NCBI GenBank assembly: GCA_002269645.1
Contig: NIVC01001469.1
Coordinates: 1 to 60,196 of the forward strand
DNA length: 60,196 nt
Source of the DNA: Macrostomum lignano
Lineage: Eukaryota
Reading direction: 5' to 3'
Both the position numbers and the translations under genes were made by a program. Shown piece by piece: positions 229 through 60,095 of this stretch; positions within the stretch are counted from its first letter, which is position 1; every line of letters starts with the position of its first letter. The notes beneath the pieces are model-generated. The model was given only the letters and a program-made list of their open reading frames with translations. It did not search any database and was not told where the DNA came from.

Positions 229-3200
229 TCATGGACAATTAAGCAACTTACGCTTCAAACTTCGCACTACTTTGCTGCCCTGCTTCTCCTCCTTTGTCAT
301 TTCTGTCTGCTTCTTGGCAAAGTTGATAAACACCTGAAGATAAGTACAGGGGAAAGTGGTGAAAAGATCACCAGTGAAGCTTTTATCTACAGAGAACTTA
401 CTCAAAAAACAAAGCAAAACGCACCTGGTCAAGCGTTGTCTGATTAACACTATAGTCCTGCACGGTTCCCTCCGATTTGAGGCTGTTGACAACGTTGAAG
501 ATGCGGCTCAGAGTGACATCCTGGCTGATCTGGTACTGCAGCAGCGTGCCGTGCTCTTCCTTCAACTGCGCCTCCGGCAGCTCGCTCATGAAGCGTTCGT
601 GAAGACTCAGTACGTCTCCTGTTAGCAGGCGGTCGCTGCTACTCGCGGCAGGGCTTCTGTCCATCATCTTTGGGTTCTGATGGCCATTGTCAGAGACGGC
701 TGTTTCAGACAATGGAGCCTCGGCGCGTGGAAGACGCAGGAAAACCGTGAAACCTTGGCCATATTTTGTCTTCAGGTGCTGCGGACTTCCCAGGCACTTC
801 AGTTGGCCATTCACCTTGAAGGTTGGATGCAAATGTCTGATTAATGTGACAAATGTCTGCGGAAACGAACCATGATTCTCTACTCGTTCGCTCACTCTTT
901 CTATACTGCCCAAGGTAAAGTGCTATTTATTAAAAATCACAGTTACCATAATAGTGAGCCTGTGGCATAGGGCCTGACAGTCCTCCATGCTGTGACTAGT
1001 GAGGATCACACAGGAGCCAGCGGCCACCATTCTTTGGATGCAGCGCCACAAGAAGCGCCGCGCCCCGGGGTCCATTCCAGCAGTCGGCTCGTCCAGGAAC
1101 ACAATGGGCGGTCCGCCAATAAAGGCAATGCCGCAGGAGAGCTTCCGCTTGTTGCCGCCGCTGTACTCTTCAGTCAGCTTGTCCAGGTGAGGCACAATGC
1201 CAACCCTATAAAAATGTGGAACCGCTTTTGTCAGAAAAAGATAAATTAGCAAAAATCAATTTGATTGGCCAGTACTCACATTCTTGAAATGTAGGTAATT
1301 AGCTCAGGAATCTGATCCTCCGCGATGCCGCGAATCCTAGCAAACAGCTGCAGTGTCTCTCTGCCAGAGAGCAGCGGCAGGAGGGCATCAAACTGTGGAC
1401 AATAGCCCATCTGCTTGTGCGCTTCGAGTACATCCGTGAGAATAGAATGCCCATTTAGGGTGGCGTCGCCACTCGTCGGATCAATGTCGCCGGTCAGCAT
1501 TTTAAAGGTGGTGGTCTTGCCTGCACCATTCACGCCCAGAAAGCCGAAGCACTCACGCTGCGAGACACCCAGAGCGACGCCATTCACTGCGGCCCGAGGA
1601 CCAGTCCTGGTATGGAAAATCTTCACCAGATCCCGAATCACCAGACAGTTGCTACCTGTGGCGCCGCCGGAATCTCCGCCAGCGTTGCCCAGCACGCGAT
1701 CACGCTCTGCTTTAACATCGTCTTCCTCGACTTCCCGGCGCTCCAGCAGTTTGCTGTACTTATCTTGATGGCAGGATCGGTAAATGCGCCCGGTGCAGCA
1801 GCCTTGGCCGCAAAAGAAGTTGTACTCAATTAGCAGTACCAGTACAAAGTATACGATGCTTTGCACAGCCAGGCAAATAATGTAGCGTATGGTTTGCTCC
1901 CATGCATTGTCACTAATCGTAACGTCGCCGTAAGATGACGCTAGAGTCTGGACGCTAACTCCCAATGAGTCAGCGAGCTCCTTGAGCTTTACGGAAAACT
2001 GATAGTAGTAGTTAAGCTCCATTAGTCCCTGTCCAAGACAAAAGTGAGGAAACACGAGGAACACATACTTCAATGCGTTTGCAGTATTCTGCATCTGGTC
2101 GTCCTTGTTCTCCAGAGCGATCATTTCTACGATTGCTACTGACATGGTGGTGACGAAGCCGACGCCAAGGTTAAAGCATGACAGCATTGTGAACGCTTTG
2201 CTAGGTACACTGAGCACCCAACTGAACGGGTACATAACCGGCGCATTGGCAAAGCCGAACAAAAGCATGATGACAATGAAGGGGCCGATAGTATCCTTGC
2301 TGACAAACGCCTCCGATTTGAAGGCAACGAAGATCAGAATGAGAATAACTAACGGGACTAAATAGTTCACCATGTTCCACAAGTGGTTTATTAGCCAATA
2401 GAGCGCTGGATTGATACCCGACACGAACTGCAGGTGCTTGGCATTCGTTCGTCTCTCTGTTATTAAGAATAGCACAAAGCTAGCCGGAATAAATGAAAGG
2501 GCGAATATGATGGAGACCACTGTGATGGCGGAAGTGATTGTCTGGCTTGTCAACGTGTTTTCAACATACTCGGAGCGCAGTGTAATGGGATGCGTCCAAC
2601 CGGACACTCCATACAGATTCTCAGAGGCCCCAGTCGGTAGCCGCGAACGAAGCATAGCATTGCTTAAAATATTCAGATAAGCGGGGCCGGACACGTATCC
2701 GCGATTGTCGTACCAGACCTGCGCTCTTAGGAGCTCCGAATTGTTAGTAGTTGGCTTTAGTGCATTGAGGGCATCGGAAAACGAAGCAGTAAAGTTGTAC
2801 ACGATCGAGTTTCCAACGTTAATGCCCATAGCAGTGACCTCAGATTTGCTGACATAGTTCAGCGTTGGATCGGTGTCGTTGACGAACAAAGAGAAACCAC
2901 CGAATCGGATCTTGAAGTATTTTGATACACTAGATTGAATGTAGTTAGTCACATTGTACAGTGTGTAATTTTCAAATATATCCGCACTCAATAGATTCTT
3001 GCTAGCTGGGGTGGGCCAATCAACGCACTTTGCACTTTCTGGATACTTTTCGTAGGAGCAGCGACAGTTGGAGGTGTCCAAAGGCAGATTGGTAGGCGTT
3101 GAGCCCCAAGTTGCAGGAGGATTTGTTGGCGCCAAACAGGAGAATTTGTCGTTGCCATGCTCAGTTGAGGTGCTGACACAGCGAGTTCCAAGAGAGTCTG

Positions 3201-6200
3201 TGTTGTAGAAATGCGACTTCAACTTGGCTGCGTCTTGTAGATTTCCAACACTTGGTGTCAGCGTCTCAACGAATGAGTAAAGCTTCTTCGTTCGCAAAGC
3301 GTTCCTGTCCCGTGTGCCTAACATGTACCATGGGGCCAGCTGCATTGGCGGATTATCCCCATCGGTAGGTCTGATTTGTTGCAAGCCGAGCGAAAGAAGA
3401 ATGAAGAATATCGGCAGAATAAATTCTGCAACGAAGCCCATCTTCGAGCGGCGAATAACGGTGAATCGCTTGATCCAGAGCGCCTTCACTTGATGGCGCA
3501 AAGGGTGATCAGTATAGCGTAAAGTCGGCGGTTGAGAGAGCGAAGCCCGGCGGCTGCCACGAGGCATGTCCAGTGGTACAGCGCTTGGAGTGGCGCAACG
3601 CGGGCTGTTTTGCTGCTTTGTATCCAGCAAGTCATCATCATCAACCAGCGGATTCGAGGCAGCGGCCGCCTCCAGTTGGCGCTCTTTTCGGAAGCTGCTG
3701 CGGCTAGAGCGAAGGTTGACGACAGCTGACGCATCCTTGTCCACGGTTTCTTCTCGATCAGCTTCAGTAACGTTCAGAAAAATTTCCTCTAGCGAGCAGT
3801 CTTCAATGCCGAACGATTCGATCCCGAGTTCGTCACGACTATTTTCTAGCTGTTGAAACAAGTTTGAAAAACTTTCACTGGCATTGAACGGCAGCTTCAC
3901 TGTTACCTCGCTAGTGGTACACTCGCCTAGCTGTGAGGTGGGTACGTAGCGCTGCACAAATGACAATAGCTTGCTTTGTTCACAACTGGTTACCAATGTC
4001 AAAGTGTAGCCATGACCGAATGCCTTCTTTAGGAACATTGGAGAGCCGGAGCAAACAAGTCGACCTTTATCGATGATGCAGATTCGGTCGCCAAGGATGT
4101 CAGCTTCGTCCATATGGTGAGTAGTGAGCAAGATTGTACGACCAGATCGGAACTTGCCAAGCACATCCCAGATGGAGCGCCTGGCGTGGGGGTCCACTCC
4201 TGCAGTTGGCTCGTCCAGAATTATTAGCTTTGAGTCTCCCACAAAGGCCATGGCTACAGACAGCTTGCGTTTCATGCCGCCGGACAGGTTTCTGCTCAAC
4301 TCGAATCGCTTGTTATCGAGGCCGACGTCCACAACAAAACTGTCAATCTGTGAGCCTATCGTACTCTTGTCCAGGCCTTTTAGCATACCATAGAAGTAGA
4401 TATGATCCTCCACAGTCAGATGGTTGAACAGCACGTTATGTTGAGGGCAAAATCCAAGGTGTTTCCGAATTTGATCCATTTGTGTGCGAATGTCGTGTCC
4501 ATAAATGTAGGCTGTACCCGTCGTGGGCGTGTACAAACCAGTCAAGATCGAAACGGTTGTACTTTTACCTAAAGAAAAATGGTTGGTTTCGAAAATTAGG
4601 CTGAAATGAGGTTTAAACAGAAAAATGCAGCTAATATGATTCTTACCAGCTCCATTGTGCCCCAGGAACGAGGTGACCTGGCCTTCGTAGAAATTGTACG
4701 TAACACTGTTGACAGCAATGAAATCCTTAGCATTTTTGCAGGCACACAAGCCAGGCTTGTATACCTTCGTAAGCGCTCGAAGTGCGGCTCCAACTTTTAG
4801 ATTTCTAGGCTCTTCCTCAAAGTGCTGCCGATCACCTGTCATTTCAACATCTCCCTGGTCAGGCGCCAGCTCAACCTTGCTGCAAGAGCTGCACCAATAA
4901 GATTTGGTAAAAGGAAAGTAAAATGGTTTCGGAACGCCATACTTTCCTGGAAAAACCTTTTCGATGTACCAAGTTAGAAGCATTAGCAGAAATGCGTCGA
5001 CCCACAGCATAAAAAGAACACCGCCAAACGTAAATGAACTATCCATCAGAGGACTCTTCGCTACGTTATCTGGCTGTATTCCAATATTCGCAAGTTCCCA
5101 GAGACCAATGTACTTGCAGCCGAGGCCAAACCCAATTTGCGGTATTAGGCAGCTGGCGGCAAGGGCGCCGGCGCCCATGCTTTCGATGAACCGGTCAACA
5201 ACAGTGTACGGAATGTAGCCGAGAAAAAACAGCACACCAGCAAACGCCGACGCGACACTGGAGTTCGAGAAAAAAACCGAGATGAAGAAGGCCTCACAGA
5301 TAGTGCTGACTACGAAGGATAAAATAAAAAAGAACAGTATTATCGGATGGCTGTTCACGATGATTCCGCCAGCTTTAATTATAATAGTCATTAGAATTGT
5401 GGCCACCAGCATTACGCATCCAGAAGTGATGAACCAGGCTAGCCAGTGTTCCCAGTCGGCCAGCCCCATGATTTTCATCATCTCTTTAAGTCGGCTCTCC
5501 TTCTCGTACACCACAGCATTGACGAGCAAGGTGACACTGTAAATCCAGGCCAGGGTCATGATCATCGGGATGACGGACTGAATAACCGTCGTAAACTGAT
5601 CCTGGATGTAGCACGGGCTGGGGAAGAGACGCAAGTAGTTTATCTGGCTAGCATTTCCCCCGAGAATTCGGCCGGTAATGCTTTGCTCAAGCAGCTCTTG
5701 AATGTGAAGAAAAAACGAAGTAAAATATTTGAAGTGTTTGGGATAGGTCGAGCGCTGACCCGGTGACCAGGTACTTGCCGTGACGCGAAACCGAAGCGTG
5801 CTGTCTACCATACTCGAGACCATGCGCAGACGATATTTCTCAAACGTGGCTCCGCCCAGAGTATCAAACGCTACAGCCGCCATGAAATAAGGCTTACTGT
5901 CGTTTTCGTTCTGCTTGAACTCGTCAATCAAGTAAAGCGAATAGTCATTCATGGCCGTCTCCGTTTGGAAGCCGCGCAACTTGTTAAGCTTAAAGCATGC
6001 CGTATAGTAATAAATTCGCCGCATTATGGCGTCAATAATTACTTTGGCTGACTGCCAATTTGAATTTTCAGACGATGTAGAAGTACTTTGAGCTAAGAAG
6101 TCGGAACCCATCTCGCATAAGTTTCCAGATCCACCACCGGTGATGCGGGTACAAATCGTAAAGAATTTCTAAAAAAATATTTTTAAATTTAATTGCTGCA

Positions 6201-12685: not shown

Positions 12686-12850
12686 CTTAGAGACGAGTGA
12701 AATGTTGAATGAAAAGCATAATTAAAATTTTTTAATTGCACAAAACTTGAAGGTCAAATTTTGTTCCCATTCTAGGGAGGGAGGGTTGGAGAATAGAAAT
12801 GTGTGACAGAAATGGTAACACATAAAAGAGAATGAGGTTGACGAGGGCTC

Positions 12851-41886: not shown

Positions 41887-42462
41887 AACAAAAGCCTAGA
41901 AATTAAAATGAAGGCTCAAGTGTAAATTAGAAGCATAAATACGAAGCCTTATGGTTTCTTCGTATATGCATAAGCTCAGGAATACTGAGTCGCAACACAG
42001 TGAGCACAGTGAGCACAAGACAGGGACATAGCAAGAAATAAGCGATTTATTGAAACAAAAGATTTGTGTTCCCTAAGTACAACGATTTCATAGTACGCCA
42101 ATCACTCTAGTAATTGGTTATATACTGGTAATCTGAGTATAATGCAGATTCGCTCGCATTTTTACAACCCCCAGAGTTAACTCAACAAATCAGTTACCAT
42201 GTGTACTTTATACAATAGTTAGATCTTTGCAACAAATTGCGTGTAGCTTGATAATATAAAATTTGTTGCATGCACGAAGCACTGAGACCTTGTGCTGGAC
42301 CTTAGATTAGAGTCCTGATACAGGCAAATGAGACCTAATAAGTCAAGTATTGAGAGGTACAGGGGAATGTCAAGCTAATGTAACAGAGCCGCTCACAAAC
42401 AAAAGCTTGAGAGCCAGGCCAAACGCAGTCTTATCTTGCCAGGCATGAAACAGAATAGATTG

Positions 42463-42654
42463 AGAGCAATGGGAAACTCAGGCTTAGATAATTGCTCCAG
42501 GGACAGCTGTGATGTCAACACAAATTTAGACCGTTTTTTTTCCTATGCGGAAAATGCCAAACCACAACAGGCACACGCTTCTTACAAGCTAATCTTTGTG
42601 TGTAGAGACACACCCTCTTTAGTTATTATGGCCATAACAGTTGAATAACAAATT
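42463..42654 (+). repeat. 192-bp direct repeat, left copy (apparent target-site duplication)
   Basis: AGAGCAATGGGAAACTCAGG...GTTGAATAACAAATT, identical by manual comparison to 46246-46437. The ORF track shows the same peptide MGNSGLDNC...MAITVE at both places. Confidence 0.95.
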
Positions 42655-45600
42655 AAATTAAAGTTCTATTAACGCATGGCTCAGATCAGACCTGTCCACC
42701 AGGGACATCTGTGTCATCCAGTCTGAAGACATACTCCCTGGGAGGACTACCCTCATCGCCTCGGTTTACCTACCGGGCGACGGCGAGATGATCCCAGTAG
42801 AGCTTGTCACACTGGTCGAGCTCTGCTCCACCAGAAACTATGAGCTGCTCGTGGCAGGTGACATCAATGCCCACCACACCCACTGGGGCAGTTCTGATAT
42901 AAACCAGAGAGGTGAAGACTTCCTGGCTTATATTGCTACTACAACCCTTGAGTTCTGTAACTCGGGTAGTACCCCTACCTTCAATAACGGACGCCGATCG
43001 GAGGTGCTGGATGCCACCCTCGCCACGCCCAGGCTCTTCCAGAGCACTAGGGAATGGCGGGTGCTTCCTGAGGCGTCCCTCTCCGATCACAAGTTCATCT
43101 CTTTCACGCTGGCCAGCGCCCGTAACGCAGGCCAGCTTTACTGGAAACGGAATGCTAGGAATACCGACTGGACCGCCTTCAGGCTTGCCCTGGAGGAGAC
43201 CTATCGTTGCACTAGCGCTCCAGTCTCCATCAACACCTGCGAAGAAGCAGATGAATTTGCGGCCGCACTTACGGACTCGCTCACTGCTGCCTTCGAAGCC
43301 TCATGCCCACTAAAGGCATATAAAGGCAAACAGTCGGCCCCATGGTGGAACCCGCAGCTTGGCGACCTCCGTCGCAGAGCCAAAAGGCTTCACCGCAGGG
43401 CCCAAAAAACTAAAAACCCGGCCGACCAAACCGCCTACCTGAACTCTATCCACGAGTTCAAGAGGCAGGTTAGGAACGCCAAAACCAACAAGTGGCGCGA
43501 ATACTGTGAGGAACTTGAGGGCTCCCGCCCCACCTCCAGAATCGTTAAAGCCCTCACCCTGGACAAAATGTCCAAACTCTCCTCAGTCAAGAGAGCCGAC
43601 GGCTCGCTCACTGAGAACCCAGGAGAAACACTGGAAGCGATGCTAACAGCGTTTTTCCCGAACGAGCCAGCTAGGCCCGGCCCCCCTGACCACTCAGTGG
43701 GCGGACACGTACTGGCTGACTCAATCATCACGGAGGACCGCGTTACTAAAGCTGTCTCCTCCTTCAAACCCTTCAAATCCCAGGACCGGACGGCGTTGTG
43801 CCAGCCTTCCTGCGGGAGGCGGTGAAATGCACCGGTTTCCTGCGGAACCTTTGCCGGCTTCTGAAAGCCTGCATTGTGCTCGGCTTTGTTCCGAAATCCT
43901 GGACCGAGGCCAAGGTGGTCTTTATCCCAAGCCTGGCCGACCGGACTACCGGTCCATTAAATCCTTCAGACCAATTAGCCTCACCTCCTCATTGGTGAAG
44001 CTGTTAGAGAGACTGGTGCTCTGGCGCCTCCTCTCTGTGGAACTGAAGAACAAGCCGCTCAGTGAGAACCAGCATGCCTTTCGGGCAGGCAGGTCCACGG
44101 AGAGCGCGCTTCACGTTCTGGTTGACATGCTGGAGAAAGCCGTTCTTGGTAATGGCTACGCTCTCGCTGTCTTCCTCGACATTGTTGGAGCCTTCGATAA
44201 TGTCCTCTTTGAGGCCTTTGACAGAGCTCTACGTGCTAGAGGAACCCACTCGCACCTCACCCGGTGGATCATGTATATGATCAGCCACCGTACTGCCACC
44301 GCACACCTGTTGGGCCACCAACGGACGGTAACCGTCTGCAAAGGCAGCCCCCAGGGCGGTGTCCTCTCTCCAGTTCTCTGGAACATGGTCATCGATGAGC
44401 TCCTCCAGGACAGCCATCTTGACCCCATCCTCAAGGTCGGTTACGCCGATGATGTCACAGCCGTGGCATCCGGACCGTCACCTGAAACCCTTAGAGATCT
44501 TTTGCAAAACTTCATTCGCTCTGCTGAACGTTGGGCGGACAGGTGCGGCCTCAGGCTCTCCGAGACCAAAACTGTCGCGATCATGTTCACCAGCAGGGTA
44601 AACTGGCGTATTCGCCCACTAAAGCTTTACGGGGTGGAAATTCCATCCTGCAAGCAAACCAAGTGTCTCGGCGTTACGCTGGACCACCGGCTGAGCTGGT
44701 CCACCCACGTCCAGGCCAAAACCAAAAAAGCCCTCGCGATTCTTGCGCAGCTGCGCAGAGCCGTCGGCACCACCTGGGGCCTCACCCCAAAGCGTCTCTG
44801 GTGGATCTATACCGCAATGGTCCGACCGGCCGTTACATACGCCGGCCTGGTCTGGACCAGCGCCTTGCAGATTAAAACCTGCCACGAAGCCCTCAAAAAG
44901 GTGCAGGGACGTGCGTGCCGCATGATCCTGAATGCCCCGCTCTCTGCTCCCTTTGACGGCCTCAACGCCTTTCTCTGCCTCCCGCCTCTGGACATCTTTG
45001 TCCGTCGCGAGGCTGCTAAAACCACCCGCCGGCTCATCGAGGCTGGTGTTAGCTTCAAGCCACAAAGAGCGATGGCGAAGCGCAAGCTCCTGCCGCACTC
45101 TGACCTGTGCCTTAAAGTTCTGGAGGAGAGTGGGAGTGCGGCTGTCCTTTCGGACGCTGAACCGCGCTCCCTCAACCTCTACCAACGCTTCAAGGTCACG
45201 ATCCCCTCCAGGGAGAACGCCAACGACAGCTGGGCCCCTCAGGAGGTTCACTGCTTCACTGACGGATCCTCCAAAGACGGTTTATCCGGCTTTGGAGTCT
45301 GCATCCTTATCAACGGCCGCGTGATTGCTACTCACGCCCAACACACTGGCAGACTCTCCAGCGTCTTCCAGAATGAAGTCCTTGCCATCAGCTCCTGTGC
45401 AGCTGAGCTCCACCGCAAGGACTTCAAGGACAGAAGAATCTTCTTCCACTCTGACAGCCAGGCCGCTTTACAGGCCCTGTGTCACACCACTACGAACTCC
45501 CGAACAGTCCGCGACTGTATCGGGCAGCTCAACAAGCTGGCTCGGAGGAACACCGTCCGGCTCACGTGGATCCCAGGACACGCCGGCTTCAAAGGTAACG

Positions 45601-46245
45601 AGCTCGCCGACTCCCTCGCTAAGGCGGGCTGTTCCGGCTCGCCCCTTGGCCCCGTGCCCCTGGCCCCCATCCCCGCCACAGTCATTAATCGTCAGATTAA
45701 CGACTGGGCGGACATCCTGCACTTGCGCAGATGGGATGGTATCTCCAACTGCCGCCAATCTCGTGCGGCAGTGCCCAATCCGTCCCTCAAGCTGCGGAGA
45801 ATCCTTTTGAATCAAAATCGAAAAGATATCCGCGCTCTCACTATGACCTTCACAGGTCACGGTTGCTTTGCCAGGCACTGCTTCCTCCGATGTGTTCGCC
45901 GGAGTGAACTCTGCCCCTTCTGCAGCCTCGAGAATGAAGATGCCATGCACTTCGTCTGCTACTGCCCGGCCTTCAACCGAGACCGGCTCAACCACCTCGG
46001 GCCCAACCCGTCCCTGGACGACGTTTGCCGGCCCGAGAACATCCCACGGCTCATCCGGTTCCTCCGGGCCACCAAGCGAGCCTCCGTCTTCCCCACCGAA
46101 GACAACGCTGCAGACAGGACCGGCAGACCTCCCTGACCGGCCCCGCGCCCTAGCCTATGCGGGTCTTTCAGGGATTAGCGGAATGGGCGACGCTCGCCTC
46201 CCCGCTGCGTCTTCGGACCGCCCTGCAGCTAAGTCAAGTAAGTCA
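42655..46245 (+). mobile_element. 5'-truncated non-LTR retrotransposon (LINE) with APE endonuclease, RT, RNase H and C-terminal CCHC knuckle; I-group, LOA/R1/Tad1-like
   Basis: The pol-like frame starts abruptly inside the APE domain right after the left repeat. It is followed by a ~95-nt 3' UTR and a short tandem tail TAAGTCAAGTAAGTCAAG abutting the right repeat. It is GC-rich relative to the AT-rich flanks and antisense to the host aldolase intron. Clade assignment is from domain architecture only. Confidence 0.95.
42662..46136 (+). CDS. Retrotransposon ORF2 (APE-RT-RNaseH-CCHC), split by two 1-nt deletions at ~43780 and ~43928
   Basis: APE: LIASVYLP, VAGDINAHHTHWGS, TPTF..G...LDATL, LSDH. 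Linker: PWWN, KSPGPDG (restored). RT: VVFIPKPG (restored), FRPISLTS, QHAFRAGRST, FLDIVGAFDNV, GSPQGGVLSPVLWN, GYADD. RNase H: CFTDGS, NEVLAI, HSDSQAAL, WIPGHAGFKGNELADSLAK. Knuckle: CPFCSLENEDAMHFVCYC. Confidence 0.93.
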
Positions 46246-46437
46246 AGAGCAATGGGAAACTCAGGCTTAGATAATTGCTCCAGGGACAGCTGTGATGTCA
46301 ACACAAATTTAGACCGTTTTTTTTCCTATGCGGAAAATGCCAAACCACAACAGGCACACGCTTCTTACAAGCTAATCTTTGTGTGTAGAGACACACCCTC
46401 TTTAGTTATTATGGCCATAACAGTTGAATAACAAATT
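46246..46437 (+). repeat. 192-bp direct repeat, right copy (apparent target-site duplication)
   Basis: Identical to 42463-42654. It begins immediately after the element's AAGTC tail and diverges from the left copy right after ...AACAAATT. Confidence 0.95.
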
Positions 46438-46814: not shown

Positions 46815-46926
46815 CAGTGCTTTCATCAGCAGCCAAAATTCCACGACCAGGTGCAACAATAGCATTTGCAATGTCCCTTAGCTCTTTTTGCTTCTTAGCA
46901 CTTAGGTATTCAGCAAACTGAGGCAT
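46815..46926 (-). CDS. ALDO: Fructose-bisphosphate aldolase class I, exon 1 (N-terminal 37 codons + 1 nt)
   Basis: Reverse complement reads [38 protein letters not shown]|gtaatt. It is 112 nt, phase 1, and joins exactly to ctaag|GA ACC TGC GGC AAG at 12685 (GTCGKRF). The spliced total is 1,101 nt = 366 aa + stop, a normal aldolase length. Too short for the ORF track. Confidence 0.9.
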
Positions 46927-48810: not shown

Positions 48811-49163
48811 ATGAATATTTTAACTTCGACATGACTTTTCTTTTATGTATACGTAGTGCTACTTTTATTTTTTACATGACTCTTCTTCTATCAGCACCCC
48901 CCGTGGCAAGCCAACAAAGAATGGAATAAAAAAATTGAGTAAAGTACATGAACTTTGAAGTAGCTTCTGACTTTTGCTTTGACATCTCAGAAACCCCCCC
49001 CCCCATGATCTCAGTTATTCTCTGAAAGCCTAGCTTGACGTCTCAGTAATTCTCCCCAGCACAGCACTATAGCTTCATTTAATTTTTACATGACACTTCT
49101 TTCATGTCTGACATGATACTTCTTTTGACTTTTACATGAAATTTCCATTAGTTTTAATAAGAG

Positions 49164-49898
49164 GCTTCTATGATTTTTTGATGACGCTTCTATGACATTT
49201 TACATGACGCTTCTATGATTTTTACATGACACTTCTATGATTTTCACAAGACGCTTCTATGATTTTTTTACATGACGTTTCTATGATTGTTTACATGACG
49301 CTTCTATGATTTTTTACATGACACTTCTATGATTTTTACATGACGCTTCTATGATTTTTTACATAACACTTCTATGATTTTTTACATGACGCTTCTATGA
49401 TTGTTTACATGACGCTTCTATGATTTTTATATGACGCTTCTACGATTCTTTACATGACGCTTCTATGATTTTTTACATGACGCTTCTATGATTTTTTACA
49501 TGACGCTTCTACGATTCTTTACATGACGCTTCTACGATTCTTTACATGACGCTTCTATGATTTTTTACATGACGCTTCTACGATTCTTTACATGACGCTT
49601 CTATGATTTTTTACATGACGCTTCTATCATTGTTTACATGACGTTTCTATGATTGTTTACATGACGCTTCTATGATTTTTATATGACGTTTTTACGATTT
49701 TTTACATGACGCTTCTATGATTCTTTACATGACGCTTCTATGATTTTTACATGACGTTTCTATGATTTTTTAAATGACGCTTCTATGATTTTTTATATGA
49801 CGCTTCTATGATTTTTTACATGACGCTTCTATGATTTTTACATGACGCTTCTATGATTTTTTATATGACACTTCTATGATTTTTTTACATGACGCTTC
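49164..49898 (+). repeat. ~23-bp minisatellite, ~32 copies
   Basis: Consensus ATGACGCTTCTATGATTTTTTAC with variable T-run length. Confidence 0.95.
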
Positions 49899-51699
49899 TT
49901 TTTAAAAAGTCTTTTAGTTTTCCTGACGTTGAAAAGCTTTAATAAAAAAAATTATACTCTATGAAAATTCGAACCATCGTCGCTGCATTTAGCAGTTCAG
50001 TTTGTTCACCTCTAGGCTAGCTCTCATCAAATTTTGCACTTATATAATTCAACACTTTAAAATCCAAGCATAGAGTAAATCACACGAAGCAGTTATGACA
50101 TAATCAGTTTCTCAGTCAGTCAGTATCAGTTAACAATATGGTTACGCAATTTAAATCAAGTCTGGTGCTACGCTTCCACACTGCATTTTCAATTCAAGTC
50201 GGAGTTACAATTCAGTTATGATGCAATCTATTTCAGAATCAGAATTCAACCAGTCAGTTTTTTCTCTAGCATTCTTACAATGCATTTCAAGTCGAAAAGT
50301 TTGCTTGAACTTTGCAAAAAAGCATGTTTTTCGAATATTTAATGCCTTTAGCATCGAGCAATTTCTTAGCCACGATGCATGTACAGTCACGGGAAAATTT
50401 CTGATCGAACAGTGCAAGTCTCATGAAAATTGGTCCAGCCATTTTTTCTCTAATCGATTGCGTACAAACAAACAAACAAGCTTTTCATTTTTAGTATATT
50501 GGATGGATGGATGGATTGGAAGTTATATTTAGTACCTATATTTAATACTTCTCATGTGCTCCGTCATTAAATATTTTTGTACTGTTTTTTAGATAATTCT
50601 TCGTTTAAATGAATGATTCATAGAAACAGTCAGCAGTTTAAAATGTGTTTTAATTTATGAGGTAGGGGCAGAAAAAGTTTTCTTGGAAATTGGTTGTTTG
50701 AAATTAATTGCTGGCACCAATGAGGTGGGGTGGATTCCACACTGACACTGGCAGTCTAGGATAAGATGATAATTCACAGGGACTGAGATCCCAATGAATA
50801 TATTTCAAAGGTTTGAGCTAACTTTTCAATTTATTGAATGCTCTAGTTCAAATATTTGGCTATATTTATAGAGACATTGGCTGTTTAAGATGGGTCCCAC
50901 TAATTCCTAGGGACTTAATATCTAGCCAAGCTAGACATTTTGCAATCTTGTCAACAACCCTACTAATAGTTTCTTTCTTGGTACGTATATCCTTATAAAA
51001 GACATCAACATGGGCAAGGATGCCATGCCCTGTGTTACACATATGCTATGTGTAAGCAATGTATCAGCAATGTAACTGACAAGTTTGCTCTTGTTGGCAA
51101 TGTTTGACAAGAGCTTGCCATCCCAATGTAGCAACAGAAGCCCATTGGATAAAAAGATATCCATTGCAAAATTCTTGTAGGTGAATACTCTGGTTTGATA
51201 AATGTTGCTCCAAGATAGAACAATATTATCAAGGTATATACCAATTGACTTGACTATACAATGCTAGTGGCTATAAAGGTGGCATTGTGGTCTAATACTT
51301 TAATGTCCTAAGCTGCAGGTATATTTGGCATAATTAATTGTATAGGGCTGCAAAAGCATTTTTGGAAAGAAGTTAAGGATTTGAGAAGCTATTAATAGTC
51401 TCAGTTAGACAAATCATCTGACCTACTTTCATTATCTAACATCTTATCAATATCAGTATAGTTGCATGAGGCAGTTAAGGTCTGCTGCTTTTGTTTATGA
51501 GCAGCTTCCACAGTACTTGTTTATTGGCCTTATTGACCTTGCTGGCCTCCCTATAGTAGATGTCGTTATTTGCCATGGGGCATAGGTACATTATCATATC
51601 TTGCCTAAATTCCTTAAGTACTAATCTTACTTTTGCCTTCATAACTTGTAATTTCCTATTTTTAAGTCTTTATGACTTTTTCCTATCTTGAGTCTTTAT

Positions 51700-52737: not shown

Positions 52738-55700
52738 ATGGACGTTGTTAAGGCTATCCGCGACTACATTCAGACCATGCTACAGATCAGTGGACAGGGC
52801 ATGAAGATACTGTTAATGGACCAGGAGACCATAGAGATACTGTCAGTTGCTTATACAATGTCAGAGATTAGTAAGCACGAGGTGTTCCTACTTGAGAGGC
52901 TGGAGAGTCCTCGCCAGCCAATGAAGCATCTCAAAGCTGTTGTATTTGTTCGGCCAACCAAGGCCAACATGCAGCTGCTGCACGCCGAGCTTCGCAGTCC
53001 AAAGTACGGCTCGTACTGTTTATTCTTTAGTCAAGCAATTAGCCGACAGGATTTAAAGAGTTTAGCCGAACACGACGAGCAAGAGGTTGTACGCGAAGTT
53101 CAAGAGGTGTTCGCCGACTACCTGGCGCTGAGCCCGCTGCTCTTCACCCCCAATCAGCGTCTGGCTGTGCGCGGATTCGCCTGGCAGCCCGGCGCGTTGC
53201 AGCGCTGCGCCGAAGGCCTGGCAGGCGTGCTTCTGTCGTTGAAACGGCTGCCGTTTATTCGCTATCAGAACTCGTCCGCCAATGCTCGCCGGCTGGCCGA
53301 GCAGCTGGCTGGGCTGGTAGAACGAGAGAAAGAGGGACTGTTTAACTTTCAGGTGCGTTGCGATTTTTTATTGTCGACATGATTGTGAAATATACGAGTA
53401 CATACGAATTTGATTAAATAATAAAAATACAGTGGAAGTGGAAGTCAATGCAAGAGAGAAAAACGAAACAAAGTATAAATAGTCAGGCTGGTTCAAACAC
53501 AAAGAGAAGTTGGTTTGTGCACTTTCCTGCTAGGTTGATGTAGCTGGATTTTTACGAAAAACTTTCAACAGACGCCCAACAGAGAGTAGTGTCACTTGTC
53601 ACTAACTAAACTTCTATTGTTTTAGTATATGTGACTAGCCATTTAGCCCCTCCTCTGGGTGGCTCTATAATAATTTCGCACAAACTCCTATTAGATATTA
53701 AGTAAGCATCTAAACCCCGAACTGTTTTAGTAGCATCTTCAGCTATATGCTTGTACCCTAAAGTAGTCACGTGGTAATCGGATCCCTCTTTTTAACAAAA
53801 TGTATTTTTAAAATATTCTTCAGCTATTTTTAACACATTCTTACACATTCTTACTTTGCTACTCAGTAGTTAACCGCAAACACTAATTGTTTATTTAGGA
53901 GCGCGGCGCCACCCACCTGCTTGTGCTAGACAGACGCGAAGATCCAGTAACCCCTCTACTAAACCAGTGGACCTACCAGGCTATGGTGCACGAACTGCTG
54001 GGCATACGCAACAATGTTGTTGAATTGGGCGACACCAAGGTCAATCTGAGTGCTCAATACGACGATTTTTATCGCGATCATTGGCACGTGAATTTTGGCG
54101 AACTGGGCGCCGCTGTCAAACAGCTAATGGAAGAGTTTCAGAGGAAACAGCAGGCCACGGCTGGAAAGATTGAAAGCATTGGAGATATGAAAAATTTTGT
54201 GGAAAATTATCCCGCTTTTAAGAAATTGTCCGGCAGTGTTACTAAACACGTTAATCTGATGTCCGAGATTTCTAAGCTAGTTGGAGAGCGAAATCTGCTT
54301 GAGGTTTGTCTGCATTTGCTGCTGTGATCATCGTTTTGAATCTTCAGGTTATTGCCCCAGTCCTCAGTGAGTGCTGCCACCCGTTTGCCCTACCAGCTCC
54401 TCAGTGAGTGCTGCCACCCCTTTACCCTACCAGCTCTTGATTGAGTGCTGCCAACTCCTTTGCCCCAACAGCTCTTCATTGAGTGCTGCCAACTCCTTTG
54501 CCCTACCAGCTCCTGAGTGAGTGCTGCCACCCCTTTACCCTACCAGCTCCTCAGTGAGTGCTGCCACCCCTTTACCCTACCAGCTCCTCAGTGAGTGCTG
54601 CCACCCCTTTACCCTACCAGCTCCTCAGTGAGTGCTGCCACCCCTTTACCCTACCAGCTCCTGAGTGAGTGCTGCCACCCCTTTACCCTACCAGCTCCTC
54701 AGTGAGTGCTGCCACCCCTTTACCCTACCAGCTCCTCAGTGAGTGCTGCCACCCCTTTACCCTACCAGCTCCTCAGTGAGTGCTGCCACCCCTTTACCCT
54801 ACCAGCTCCTCAGTGAGTGCTGCCACCCCTTTACCCTACCAGCTCCTCAGTGAGTGCTGCCACCCCTTTACCCTACCAGCTCCTCAGTGAGTGCTGCCAA
54901 CTCCTTTGCCCTATCAGCTCCTCAGTGAGTGCTGCCAACTCCTTTGCCCTACCAGCTCCTCAGTGAGTGCTGCCAACTCCTTTGCCCGTGGTTTGAAATA
55001 TTGACAGTTTTCCAATGGTTAAAACATGCCAAACCAACTGCTTGTCCCATAGGTGTCCGAACTCGAGCAAGAGCTGGCAGCCCTAGGCGGCGAGGCGCAC
55101 GCCCACCTGCAGCGGGTTCAGCATCTGATCGCTTCGCCGAAAGTCACGGAGCTGGACGCGCTCCGGCTGGCGCTGCTGTTTGCGCTGCGCTACGAGACTC
55201 AGGCAGCGTCGGCGCTGCCAGCCCTGCGGGACGCCTTGGCGCGTAGGGGGCTCAACGAACAGCAGACCGGGCTCATCGCGGCGCTGCTCAGGTGAGGAGA
55301 CTGCAGAAAAAAAAATAGTTTTGAATATTAAGTGAGAAATAGTCTATGAAAGAGTTTGCTGCTGATGTCTATGGCCAAATTATCAACTTTGGTGCCTTTT
55401 CCGTCTATGTCTATGGGCAAGACCGAATCTAGCGCAGCTAAATAGGAGAATTCTCAACTTGGTTAGCTTAACTATCAAGGCTGTAGAAAGCAACACCAGG
55501 TTAGTATAGCATTTTGCAGCCCATTTGGGCTTACGCGCATTGAATTTAATCCAAGATACGTTTGCCAATGTAACAGAGCATTTGTCTATGGTAGCAAGGC
55601 TGGCGCAGCGGCATTTAATTTGGTCCAAAAAGCATCAATTTGGTCCAAACACTCGTGAGCCATTGGACAAACTCTTGCCTTCTCTCAACCGTCTGCAGGT

Positions 55701-56953
55701 TTTTGCGCACCGCTGGAATGTCAGCGTCTCTACCAAAAATTTTCGGTTGCTTTTCCAGAGCTCTGCTGATAGTCGAAATCTGATAACCAACTGGAGCTGT
55801 TCCCTCAACTTCTGCTGCATTTCGGCAACGTCAACAAAGGGTTCGTCTCAACTGCATCGAGCAGCAGTTGGACCTGAGGCTCTCGAGCAACTTGCCTTGG
55901 CGATTGCCACCCTTTCGCAGGCGATCTCTGCCGGCAGAGTTTCAACGCGCTGCTGGATTCTGTAAACCACCTTTGGGTGTTCACCTCCGTCGAGTGCTTC
56001 GATCACAAGCCAATGACATTCGTTCAACAGCCTAGCATATGGTCCACAATTCTGGGACTGAGCTGCAAATGAACTAAATGGACCAAATTGATGCTTGTTG
56101 GACCAAATTAAATGCCGCTGCGCTAGCCTTGCTACCATAGACAAAAGCTCCATTACTTTGACAAACATATCTTGGATTAAATTCGATGCACGTAAGCCCA
56201 AATGGGCTGCAAAAAGCTATATTAAAATCAAATGGTAATCAGGTGACCATGAGGGCCTTTAACGACTCGAAACGCGTCTAATACGACTTGAGTGGCGCGT
56301 CACAAGCGCGTCACTTAGAGTCGCAGACGATAAAACGCTTTAAAAGGACTAAGGCAACTCTTTTACGACTTTTTGGCATTTTATATCTCGTAGTTTAGAA
56401 TAACTTCTGTCTTACTTTACTGGGACATGAACCTTTTGTTTCTCTTTGCTGCAGATACGGCGGCGTCAAGGCTCGAACCAGCGACCTATTCGGCACGCAG
56501 ACGCCGCTGTCAGTTACCAAGCGCCTATTCAAAGGCATTAAAGGTGTTGAAAATATTTTTACTCAACACCAACCGCTGCTGGCCGACCTCATTGATCAGG
56601 CTTGCAAAGCCAAGCTCAAGGAGGCCGCCTATCCGTTCGTGTCGGCGCCGTCTGCCGCGGCACAGCAGCGACCAGCTGACCTCATTGTCTTCGTTGTTGG
56701 CGGCGTCACCTATGTTGAAGCCCTGGCTGTGCACAATTGCAATAAGAACATACCAGTTGTCAACGTGTTGCTAGGCGGTACATCAGTGATTAATACTCGA
56801 TCATTCCTTGAAGAGGTGGCCGCCGCTGTCGACTCGTCGGCTGAGCCGCCGACTTCGGGCGGATCGGCGCCGACTGGCTCCAGCAGCGGACCAGCTGGCG
56901 GGGTTGGGCCCGCTGCCAGGCTGCTCAGCGGGATTAAGGCCAATCGGTTTTGA
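52738..56953 (+). CDS. VPS45: Vacuolar protein sorting-associated protein 45 (Sec1/Munc18 family), 4 exons, 585 aa
   Basis: Exons 52738-53352, 53899-54303, 55053-55291, 56455-56953 with GT-AG boundaries and consistent phases (0,0,2). N-terminus [31 protein letters not shown], plus [79 protein letters not shown] and LLGGTSVIN, are characteristic of Vps45. Confidence 0.95.
54355..54987 (+). repeat. 37-bp minisatellite, ~17 copies, in VPS45 intron 2
   Basis: Unit CTCCTCAGTGAGTGCTGCCACCCCTTTACCCTACCAG; period 37 verified (TACCAG at 54541 and 54578). Confidence 0.96.
55505..56221 (-). mobile_element. Internally deleted, degenerate IS630-Tc1-mariner-type DNA transposon (MITE-like) in VPS45 intron 3
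   Basis: Inverted repeats 55505-55647 and 56079-56221 (143 bp, about 11 mismatches by eye), both ending in TA. The interior on the minus strand gives frameshifted pieces resembling a Tc1/IS630 N-terminal HTH region: [23 protein letters not shown] / [17 protein letters not shown] / [14 protein letters not shown] / [11 protein letters not shown]...[17 protein letters not shown]. No DDE domain seen. Confidence 0.75.
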
Positions 56954-57080
56954 CTTTCTAGATGAGCTCTGATTGCTATTCAATATTCGTGTGATTTTGC
57001 TTGTTTCCTCTGTGCATGTCTTCTTTCGCTCTCATTTAAGAAAATTTACTTTGATGTTGATGTAATCTCGATCCTAAGCC

Positions 57081-58330
57081 CCCTAATTGGGACTTTATAA
57101 TCCCAATCATTAATCCTTTAAAAGTGATCCCTAATTGGGACTTCATAATCCCGATGGCCAATCACCTGATCGGGATCCCTAATTGGGACCTTAGAATCCC
57201 GATGGCCAATCACCTGATCGGGATCCCTAATTGAGACCTCATAATCCCGATTGCCACTCACCTGATCGGGATCCCTAATTGAGACCTCAGAATCCCGATG
57301 GCCAATCACCTGATCGGGATCCCTAATTGGGACTTCATAATCCCGATGGCCAATCACCTGATCGGGATCCCTAATTGAGACCTTAGAATCCCGATGGCCA
57401 ATCACCTGATCGGGATCCCTAATTGGGACTACATAATCCCAATGGCCAATCACCTGATCGGGATCCCTGATTGGGACTACATAATCCCGATGGCCAATCA
57501 CCTGATCGGGATCCCTAATTGAGACCTTAGAATCCCGATGGCCAATCACCTGATCGGGATCCCTAATTGAGACCTCAGAATCCCGATGGCCAATCACCTG
57601 ATCGGGATCCCTAATTGAGACCTTAGAATCCCGATGGCCAATCACCTGATCGGGATCCCTAATTGGGACTTCATAATCCCGATGGCCAATCACCTGATCG
57701 GGATCCCTAATTGAGACCTCAGAATCCCGATGGCCAATCACCTGATCGGGATCCCTAATTGAGACCTCAGAATCCCGATGGCCAATCACCTGATCGGGAT
57801 CCCTAATTGAGACCTCATAATCCCGATGGCCAATCACCTGATCGGGATCCCTAATTGAGACCTTAGAATCCCGATGGCCAATCACCTGATCGGGATCCCT
57901 AATTGGGACTTCATAATCCCGATGGCCAATCACCTGATCGGGATCCCTAATTGAGACCTCAGAATCCCGATGGCCAATCACCTGATCGGGATCCCTAATT
58001 GAGACCTCAGAATCCCGATGGCCAATCACCTGATCGGGATCCCTAATTGAGACCTCATAATCCCGATGGCCAATCACCTGATCGGGATCCCTAATTGAGA
58101 CCTTAGAATCCCGATGGCCAATCACCTGATCGGGATCCCTAATTGGGACTTCATAATCCCGATGGCCAATCACCTGATCGGGATCCCTAATTGAGACCTC
58201 AGAATCCCGATGGCCAATCACCTGATCGGGATCCCTAATTGAGACCTCAGAATCCCGATGGCCAATCATCTGATCGGATCCCTAATTGAGACCTCAGAAT
58301 CCCGATGGCCAATCATCTGATCGGGATCCC
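57081..58330 (+). repeat. 48-bp minisatellite, ~25 copies, with internal hairpin
   Basis: Unit CCGATGGCCAATCACCTGATCGGGATCCCTAATTGAGACCTCAGAATC. ATCCCGAT/ATCGGGAT form an 8-bp inverted pair in each unit. Confidence 0.97.
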
Positions 58331-58912: not shown

Positions 58913-60095
58913 GCTGGGCCACCGCCAGCCTCCCAGATCCTCAGTTACTGGGCCAGCCTCCCAGATCCTCAGTTGCTGGGCCAGCTTCCCAGACCCTCAG
59001 TTGCTGGGCCAGCCTCCCAGACCCTCAGTTGCTGGGCCAGCCTCCCAGACCCTCAGTTGCTGGGCCAGCCTCCCAGACCCTCAGTTGCTGGGCCAGCTTC
59101 CCAGACCCTCGGTTGCTGGGCCAGCTTCCCAGACCCTCGGTTGCTGGGCCAGTCTACCAGACCCTCAGTTGCTGGGCCAGCCTCCCAGACCCTCAGCTGT
59201 TGGGCCAGCCTCCCAGACCCTCAGTTGCTGGGCCAGCCTCCCAGACCCTCAGTTGCTGGGCCAGCCTCCCAGACCCTCAGTTGCTGGGCCAGCTTCCCAG
59301 ACCCTCGGTTGCTGGCCAGTCTACCAGACCCTCGTTGCTGGGCCAGTCTACCAGACCCTCAGTTGCTGGGCCAGCCTCCCAGACCCTCAGTTGTTGGGCC
59401 AGCTTCTCAGACCCTCAGTTACTGGGCCAGCTTCCCAGACCCTCAGTTGCTGGCCAGCCTCCAGACCCTCAGTTGCTGGGCCAGCCTCCCAGACCCTCAG
59501 TTGCTGGGCCAGCTTCCCAGACCCTCGGTTGCTGGGCCAGTCTACCAGACCCTCGGTTGCTGGCCAGTCTACCAGACCCTCAGTTGCTGGGCCAGCCTCC
59601 CAGACCCTCAGTTGTTGGGCCAGCTTCTCAGACCCTCAGTTACTGGGCCAGCTTCCCAGACCCTCAGTTGCTGGGCCAGCCTCCCAGATCCTCAGTTGCT
59701 GGGCCAACCTCCCAGACCCTCAGTTGCTGGGCCAGCCTCCCAGACCCTCAGTTGCTGGGCCAGCCTCCCAGACCCTCAGTTGCTGGGCCAGCCTCCAGAT
59801 CCCTCAGTTGCTGGGCCAGCTTCCCAGACCCTCAGTTGTTGGGCCAGCTTCTCAGACCCTCAGTTACTGGGCCAGCTTCCCAGATCCTCGTTGCTGGGCC
59901 AGTCTACCAGACCTCAGTTGCTGGGCCAGCCTCCCAGACCCTCAGCTGTTGGGCCAGCCTCCCAGACCCTCAGTTGCTGGGCCAGCCTCCCAGATCCTCA
60001 GTTGCTGGGCCAGCTTCCCAGACCCTCAGTTGTTGGGCCAGCTTCTCAGACCCTCAGTTACTGGGCCAGCTTCCCAGATCCTTAGTTGCTGGGCC
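58913..60095 (+). repeat. 28-bp minisatellite, ~42 copies
   Basis: Unit CCAGCCTCCCAGACCCTCAGTTGCTGGG with minor variants and indels. Confidence 0.96.

Follow-up and report, generated by a model that had tools for sequence, protein, structure and literature searches.

Long target-site duplications flanking long interspersed nuclear elements (LINEs) have been published for L1, Dualen-4b_cRei and R9. Here we describe a further instance in a 60,196-bp stretch of DNA from Macrostomum lignano (contig NIVC01001469.1, positions 1 to 60,196, forward strand; hereafter the window), where a 5'-truncated LINE, assigned by its domain order to the I group, lies in intron 1 of a fructose-bisphosphate aldolase gene between two identical 192-bp copies of intron DNA. 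That these copies are the target-site duplication of a single LINE insertion is well supported. An earlier note on this DNA had proposed an undescribed integration mode; given the published cases this proposal is not supported, and the insertion is a neat if rare example of something LINE integration is already known to produce. A new integration mode, even if true, would not be unprecedented.

R9 is an R2-like element that has a restriction-like endonuclease, is specific to 28S ribosomal DNA and leaves a duplication of fixed length. For R9 of bdelloid rotifers a 126-bp duplication is cited in a study of Dualen insertions (bioRxiv 10.1101/2022.05.23.493040). In the same study, Dualen-4b_cRei of Chlamydomonas reinhardtii left duplications of >50 bp in over half of its de novo insertions (median 900 bp), and the combination in Dualen of an APE (apurinic/apyrimidinic endonuclease) domain with a restriction-like endonuclease was suggested by the authors as the cause of the long duplications. 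For L1, which has an APE-type endonuclease, duplications of >100 bp were seen in <10% of events in HeLa cells; in cells deficient in nucleotide excision repair long duplications dominate, reach 5-6 kb, and were explained by a second nick far from the first (PMC5223499). An association of extremely long duplications with 5'-truncated L1 inserts in particular has been noted (PMC2912911). Among the clades of the I group, RNase H is listed for I, Nimb, Ingi, Loa, R1, Tad1 and Outcast (PMC4640811).

The flanking duplication and its junctions

The left copy (42463-42654) and the right copy (46246-46437) are identical at 192 of 192 positions in a repeat search and in a blastn comparison of the window with itself, as the earlier note had reported. 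That note had also asked whether the 192 bp recur elsewhere; within the window there are these two copies only, and nothing else there matches them above noise level. The copies are spaced 3783 bp from start to start, which is the sum of the repeat (192 bp), a filler (13 bp) and the LINE (3578 bp). The match cannot be extended in either direction (the preceding bases are G and A, the next bases A and T), and the 192-bp repeat is therefore exactly delimited. A perfect match of this length is effectively impossible by chance. The first two bases of the right copy, AG, could instead complete a second TAAGTCAAG unit of the LINE tail, so the length of the duplication is 190-192 bp. The repeat has a GC content of 40%, compared with about 58% for the LINE, and it lies within aldolase intron 1, which agrees with its initial description as AT-rich host intron DNA. 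No tRNA was found inside the 192 bp, and an Rfam search of the repeat returned a single match, to SNORD87, which at 23 bits (E=0.53) is below the gathering score of 50. Each copy contains a perfect 12-bp palindrome, TTATGGCCATAA (42626-42637 and 46409-46420), which stops 17 bp short of the right-hand end of the copy, near the position proposed below for the second-strand break.

At the 3' junction the tandem-repeat tail of the LINE, TAAGTCAAGTAAGTCA (46230-46245, + strand), consisting of one TAAGTCAAG unit and TAAGTCA, runs straight into the right copy at 46246. On the 5' side a filler of about 13 nt, AAATTAAAGTTCT (42655-42667, + strand), comes between the left copy and the LINE; its first 5 nt equal the last 5 nt of the duplication (AAATT). 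The filler has no homology to the related contig L001 or the related protein P0001; no other copy occurs in the window at 0-1 mismatch, and none was found in the relatives. Homology to L001, in both DNA and protein, begins at about 42668 with ATT AAC GCA TGG (I N A W). It is ordinary for truncated LINE copies to have additional nucleotides at this junction, and the succession of left copy, some 13 nt, and the second open reading frame (ORF2) from about residue 70 of the relative's protein is a classic 5' truncation with filler. The exact bracketing of the element described earlier therefore stands on the right, where the copy abuts the tail, and not on the left, where the filler separates the two.

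The LINE, its relatives and its host intron

The LINE spans 3578 bp (42668-46245, + strand) and aligns to P0001, its closest full-length homologue (1232 aa, from a Logan contig), from residue ~70 to the end (residues ~70-1224) with 56-64% amino acid identity. It is without ORF1, the 5' untranslated region (5'UTR) and the first ~70 codons of ORF2, as judged from the 1232-aa ORF2 product of P0001. Pfam comparisons recover the C-terminal part of the APE domain (42812-43099; PF14529 Exo_endo_phos_2, E=3.5e-19, profile positions 21-116 of 117), a reverse transcriptase domain (43926-44681; PF00078 RVT_1, E=3.1e-34) and an RNase H domain (45240-45632; PF00075, E=1.2e-12), all on the + strand; the PF14529/PF03372 match falls on the truncated N-terminal part, and the full APE domain is present in the relatives P0001 and P0002. 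A C-terminal CCHC motif (CPFC...H...C; 45912-45974, + strand) is conserved in P0001. Pfam and the alignment to P0001 bear out the earlier reading of the element as 5'-truncated and of APE-RT-RNase H type. These three are the only Pfam domains, and only ~55 residues lie beyond the CCHC motif, too few to accommodate a restriction-like endonuclease. The APE, reverse transcriptase and RNase H domains follow one another in that order in one ORF, the terminal repeats are not borne by the element, and a simple tail is joined directly to target DNA. By domain order and homologues the LINE belongs to the I group, an assignment made at group level.

The ORF is open over ~1150 codons except for two deletions of 1 bp each, both in short homopolymers on the + strand and separated by 150 bp. 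The first -1 frameshift is at 43779-43781 (CCC, where the intact frame requires CCCC; inside FKS|PGPDG) and the second at 43929-43930 (AA, where AAA is required; inside VVFIP|KPG), both by comparison with P0001 and L002. They could reflect a defective source element, a change after insertion or a consensus error; since host ORFs elsewhere in the window run uninterrupted for 4.8 kb, real changes are more likely than consensus errors. These frameshifts also bear on the age of the copy, which the earlier note had called very recent. This was overstated: the absence of differences between the copies (0/192) bounds their divergence at ~1.6% (95%), and the LINE copy is young, not demonstrably very recent.

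In a protein search, the named homologue nearest to the LINE is a partial protein of Macrostomum lignano (74% identity over 67% of the query), and the best full-length match has 64% identity. Two related contigs, L001 (Logan ERR14788467) and L002 (JGI 3300038379), show 60-64% protein identity to the LINE and share its 3' end. The 3'UTR of the LINE (46137-46229, + strand) contains a conserved block, TTAGCGGAATGGGCG...CGCC..CGCT, with a predicted hairpin, followed by CCCTGCAGC; the part common to all three elements is TTAGCGGAATGGGCG...CGCC..CGCTGC...CCCTGCAGC. RNAalifold predicts from the three sequences a hairpin AGCGG..GGGCG-loop-CGCC..CCGCT with a variable loop (window 46173-46210; L001 5889-5925; L002 2438-2473), which lies directly upstream of CCCTGCAGC and the tail. 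The reverse transcriptase may recognize this hairpin, a lead drawn from three sequences only. L002 ends in TAAGTCAAAGTAAGTCAGTAAGTCAA.. and L001 in TAAGTCAAAGT, in each case a TAAGTCA-type tail as in the LINE, with unrelated DNA after it. L001 carries a 525-aa ORF1 and a 5'UTR upstream of ORF2, and the 192-bp repeat is not found there. Because the flanks of the relatives diverge after the shared tail, the 192 bp are host DNA and not part of the element. Attachment of the repeat to other copies, which had been raised as a possible objection, was not found in these two nearest relatives.

Exact scans of metagenome and prokaryote-genome collections for the 3'UTR motif gave 0 matches, and scans with protein patterns retrieved relatives of <=36% identity from the metagenomes and nothing from the prokaryote genomes. 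No second copy of the family was found in the window, in the protein collection or in the contigs of closer relatives. Searches for flanking duplications around L001 and L002 (60-64% identity) and around L020-L022 (44-46%) either recovered the 3' junction alone or found flanks that did not match. Tails of the (TAA)n type are those of the Drosophila I factor, and such tails occur in two distant clade relatives, L018 and L019 (~35% identical to the LINE; both from ENA ERZ21736675). The 5'-truncated L018 has a 12-bp duplication, TACGTTCAACGT, and the full-length L019 one of 14 bp, TACTGTTTCCTCTA; the clade baseline of duplication length is short in these two relatives. L018 (6001-8994) is an I-like LINE inserted in a Pao/BEL-type long terminal repeat (LTR) retrotransposon, between the reverse transcriptase and integrase genes.

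The host intron is intron 1 of the aldolase gene, which is encoded on the - strand (intron 12686-46814, 34,129 bp). Exon 1 (46815-46926) begins with ATG at 46926-46924 and ends ...AADESTG|gt at 46815/46814 with a GT donor; exon 2 follows ag| at 12686/12685 in frame, and the reading frame resumes after the AG at 12687-12686 with a canonical fructose-bisphosphate aldolase N-terminus. The LINE is antisense to the gene. In addition to the LINE and both flanking copies, the intron holds a 29-kb minisatellite (12851-41886), an array of ~1060 copies of a 28-bp unit, AGTCTGCGGATCTGAGAGGGGGCGGCCT (88% matches, GC 64%, GC skew +0.4), which ends 577 bp upstream of the left copy. A degenerate ~55-bp repeat (42350-42466) extends into the left copy. 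Outside the minisatellite the + strand has 5 occurrences of the motif TTGAGAG, which is also the motif at the proposed first nick of the LINE (TTG|AGAG), and 3 of them (42350, 42407 and 42460) belong to the degenerate repeat. The first follows an 11-mer, TAAGTCAAGTA (42339-42349, + strand), that is identical to the LINE tail on the same strand, 113 bp upstream of the left copy. This 11-mer may be the tail-only scar of an aborted insertion of the LINE family, with a hint of target preference, or it may be due to chance. A decayed older LINE copy upstream of the left copy was considered and rejected, as only the 11-mer matches.

The window is unusually rich in minisatellites, with further tandem arrays at 49082-49899, 54357-54987, 57126-58330 and 58924-60095 (units of 23, 37, 48 and 28 bp, respectively). 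The locus is flanked by host genes, an ABCA-type transporter with an uninterrupted 1611-codon ORF (1276-6111, - strand) and a Sec1/VPS45-family gene (52738-57000, + strand; PF00995 homologues, best database match 55% identical).

Origin of the duplication

The arrangement probably results from a single event of target-primed reverse transcription (TPRT) in aldolase intron 1, in which an I-group LINE was inserted with a second-strand break 190-192 bp from the first nick, as a sporadic outcome of the ordinary process. The anatomy of the locus matches what TPRT predicts for two strand breaks at that distance. The locus combines a duplication of >100 bp, a 5'-truncated insert, and an intact 3' end and tail, as in sporadic long-duplication TPRT. 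We infer that the bottom (-) strand would have been nicked at TTG|AGAG (42462/42463 in present coordinates), and that the freed 3'-OH would have primed cDNA synthesis from the tail, possibly with AG as microhomology. Reverse transcription would then have halted in the APE domain, ~2.3 kb before the 5' end, and the top strand would have been broken 190-192 bp along, at AAATT|TTCATG. The 3' end of the top strand would have been joined to the cDNA via ~13 extra nucleotides and would have primed second-strand synthesis, and fill-in of two 192-nt single-stranded stretches would have produced the duplication. The distant second break could have been cut by the LINE endonuclease, or it could have been a pre-existing nick left by replication or transcription, the gene being highly expressed and its 5' end close by.

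Two points weigh against this account. It concerns one insertion only, and a sporadic event is preferred to a family rule from prior expectation and from distant relatives (35% amino acid identity), the closest relatives, L001 and L002, having yielded 3' junctions only. The structure is, moreover, read from assembled sequence.

The foremost alternative is that a distant second-strand break is a rule: an APE-only, non-site-specific family of I-group LINEs (or LINE integration in this host generally) would regularly break the second strand ~190 bp away, each insertion duplicating a sizeable host segment, with the break set by chromatin or replication structure (e.g., a nucleosome repeat or an Okazaki-fragment end) and not by the endonuclease beside the first nick. 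The sole available copy does have such a duplication, family-level long duplications exist in R9 (126 bp) and Dualen-4b_cRei (median 900 bp) (bioRxiv 10.1101/2022.05.23.493040), and no short duplication was found for L001 or L020, though their 5' ends possibly lie outside the contigs. This sample is nevertheless a single copy, the distant clade relatives have duplications of 12 and 14 bp, and the LINE has neither the restriction-like endonuclease nor the site specificity of the R9 and Dualen precedents. Sporadic long duplications with 5'-truncated inserts are, moreover, a known minor outcome of APE-type TPRT (PMC5223499, PMC2912911), of which an occasional case is expected. We therefore regard a family rule as unlikely, and by our estimate the sporadic outcome of ordinary TPRT, as seen with 5'-truncated L1 inserts, is strongly favored over it. 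The suggestion in the earlier note that the length corresponds to about one nucleosome repeat has a single length as its basis.

Were the rule true, each insertion would copy nucleosome-sized host DNA and be flanked by repeats long enough for deletion by recombination. If it held at many host copies, R9 and Dualen would be joined by a third case at the level of a family, the first in which APE is the only endonuclease, and the determinant of the second-strand break would become directly testable.

It is still less probable that the 192 bp were a pre-existing tandem duplication of host DNA, or the product of separate repair or replication slippage, and that the LINE entered by chance exactly at the junction. 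The region is rich in tandem repeats, with the minisatellite 577 bp away and the ~55-bp degenerate repeat entering the left copy. Such an origin, however, requires zero divergence between the copies and an insertion precisely at the copy/copy junction, a ~1-in-192 chance for insertion within one copy's length. The insertion would also need to have made no duplication of its own: the left flank ends ..CAAATT and the right flank begins AGAGCA.., with nothing in common, and the lack of any further short duplication there speaks against an insertion between copies that already existed.

An assembly artefact, with one copy of the 192 bp in the real genome, seems about equally improbable. Perfect identity is what a copy-paste error would produce. 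Against this, both novel junctions (repeat end to filler to truncated ORF2, and tail to repeat start) are specific and can only derive from reads; provided that both are real, the element necessarily has the 192 bp on either side. In addition, the adjoining assembled 29-kb minisatellite implies long reads able to span the 3.8-kb structure, and the intact host ORFs indicate good consensus quality.

That the 192 bp are borne by the element, either as the terminal direct repeat of an LTR-, DIRS- or PLE (Penelope-like element)-like element or as a transduced flank, is the least credible origin and can be dismissed: direct repeats at both ends of an element encoding reverse transcriptase are superficially LTR-like, but relatives with the same 3'UTR and tail stop at the tail and continue into unrelated DNA, the full-length L001 has ORF1 and a 5'UTR where the repeat should be, the LINE is truncated inside its APE domain, the right copy has no tail after it and so is not a 3' transduction, and the repeat and element differ in GC content (40% vs ~58%). 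Membership of the LTR, DIRS or PLE groups was accordingly rejected, the repeat not travelling with the element and being absent from both L001 and L002.

The locus compared with known long duplications

The insertion, read as a sporadic TPRT event, is a clean natural example of a >100-bp LINE duplication outside mammals and L1, an outcome otherwise known mostly from cell culture. It shows that the endonuclease does not set a fixed distance between the TPRT strand breaks. Through flanking repeats of such length, functional host DNA may be duplicated, and recombination between the repeats may later excise the insertion precisely (as discussed in PMC5223499); in the present case intron sequence only was duplicated, with the right copy 376 bp from the exon-1 donor.

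R9 is alike in that a non-LTR retrotransposon generated a duplication of >100 bp. It differs from the present LINE, which has an APE domain, no restriction-like endonuclease and a site in an aldolase intron, and whose relatives occupy unrelated sites. Dualen-4b_cRei likewise produces LINE insertions flanked by long duplications of host DNA, but with two endonucleases and a pattern documented at the family level, compared with one case of an APE-only LINE here. Because it has no restriction-like endonuclease, the LINE is neither R9-like nor Dualen-like.

With LINEs of the I group the present element shares the APE-RT-RNase H order and a CCHC motif at the C-terminus, as well as a tail of short tandem repeats and, in its full-length relatives, an ORF1 of its own; it differs in its tail unit, which is TAAGTCA(A)AG and not TAA, and in its duplication of 192 bp, compared with 12-14 bp in L018 and L019. 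The long duplications of L1 resemble it in their APE-type endonuclease, TPRT, length of >100 bp, 5'-truncated insert and distant second-strand break. The differences are that L1 belongs to its own clade and has a poly(A) tail, whereas the present LINE is of the I group with RNase H and TAAGTCA repeats, and that the L1 events come from cultured cells, whereas the present insertion is in the germline of an invertebrate-like genome, where it is either fixed or segregating.

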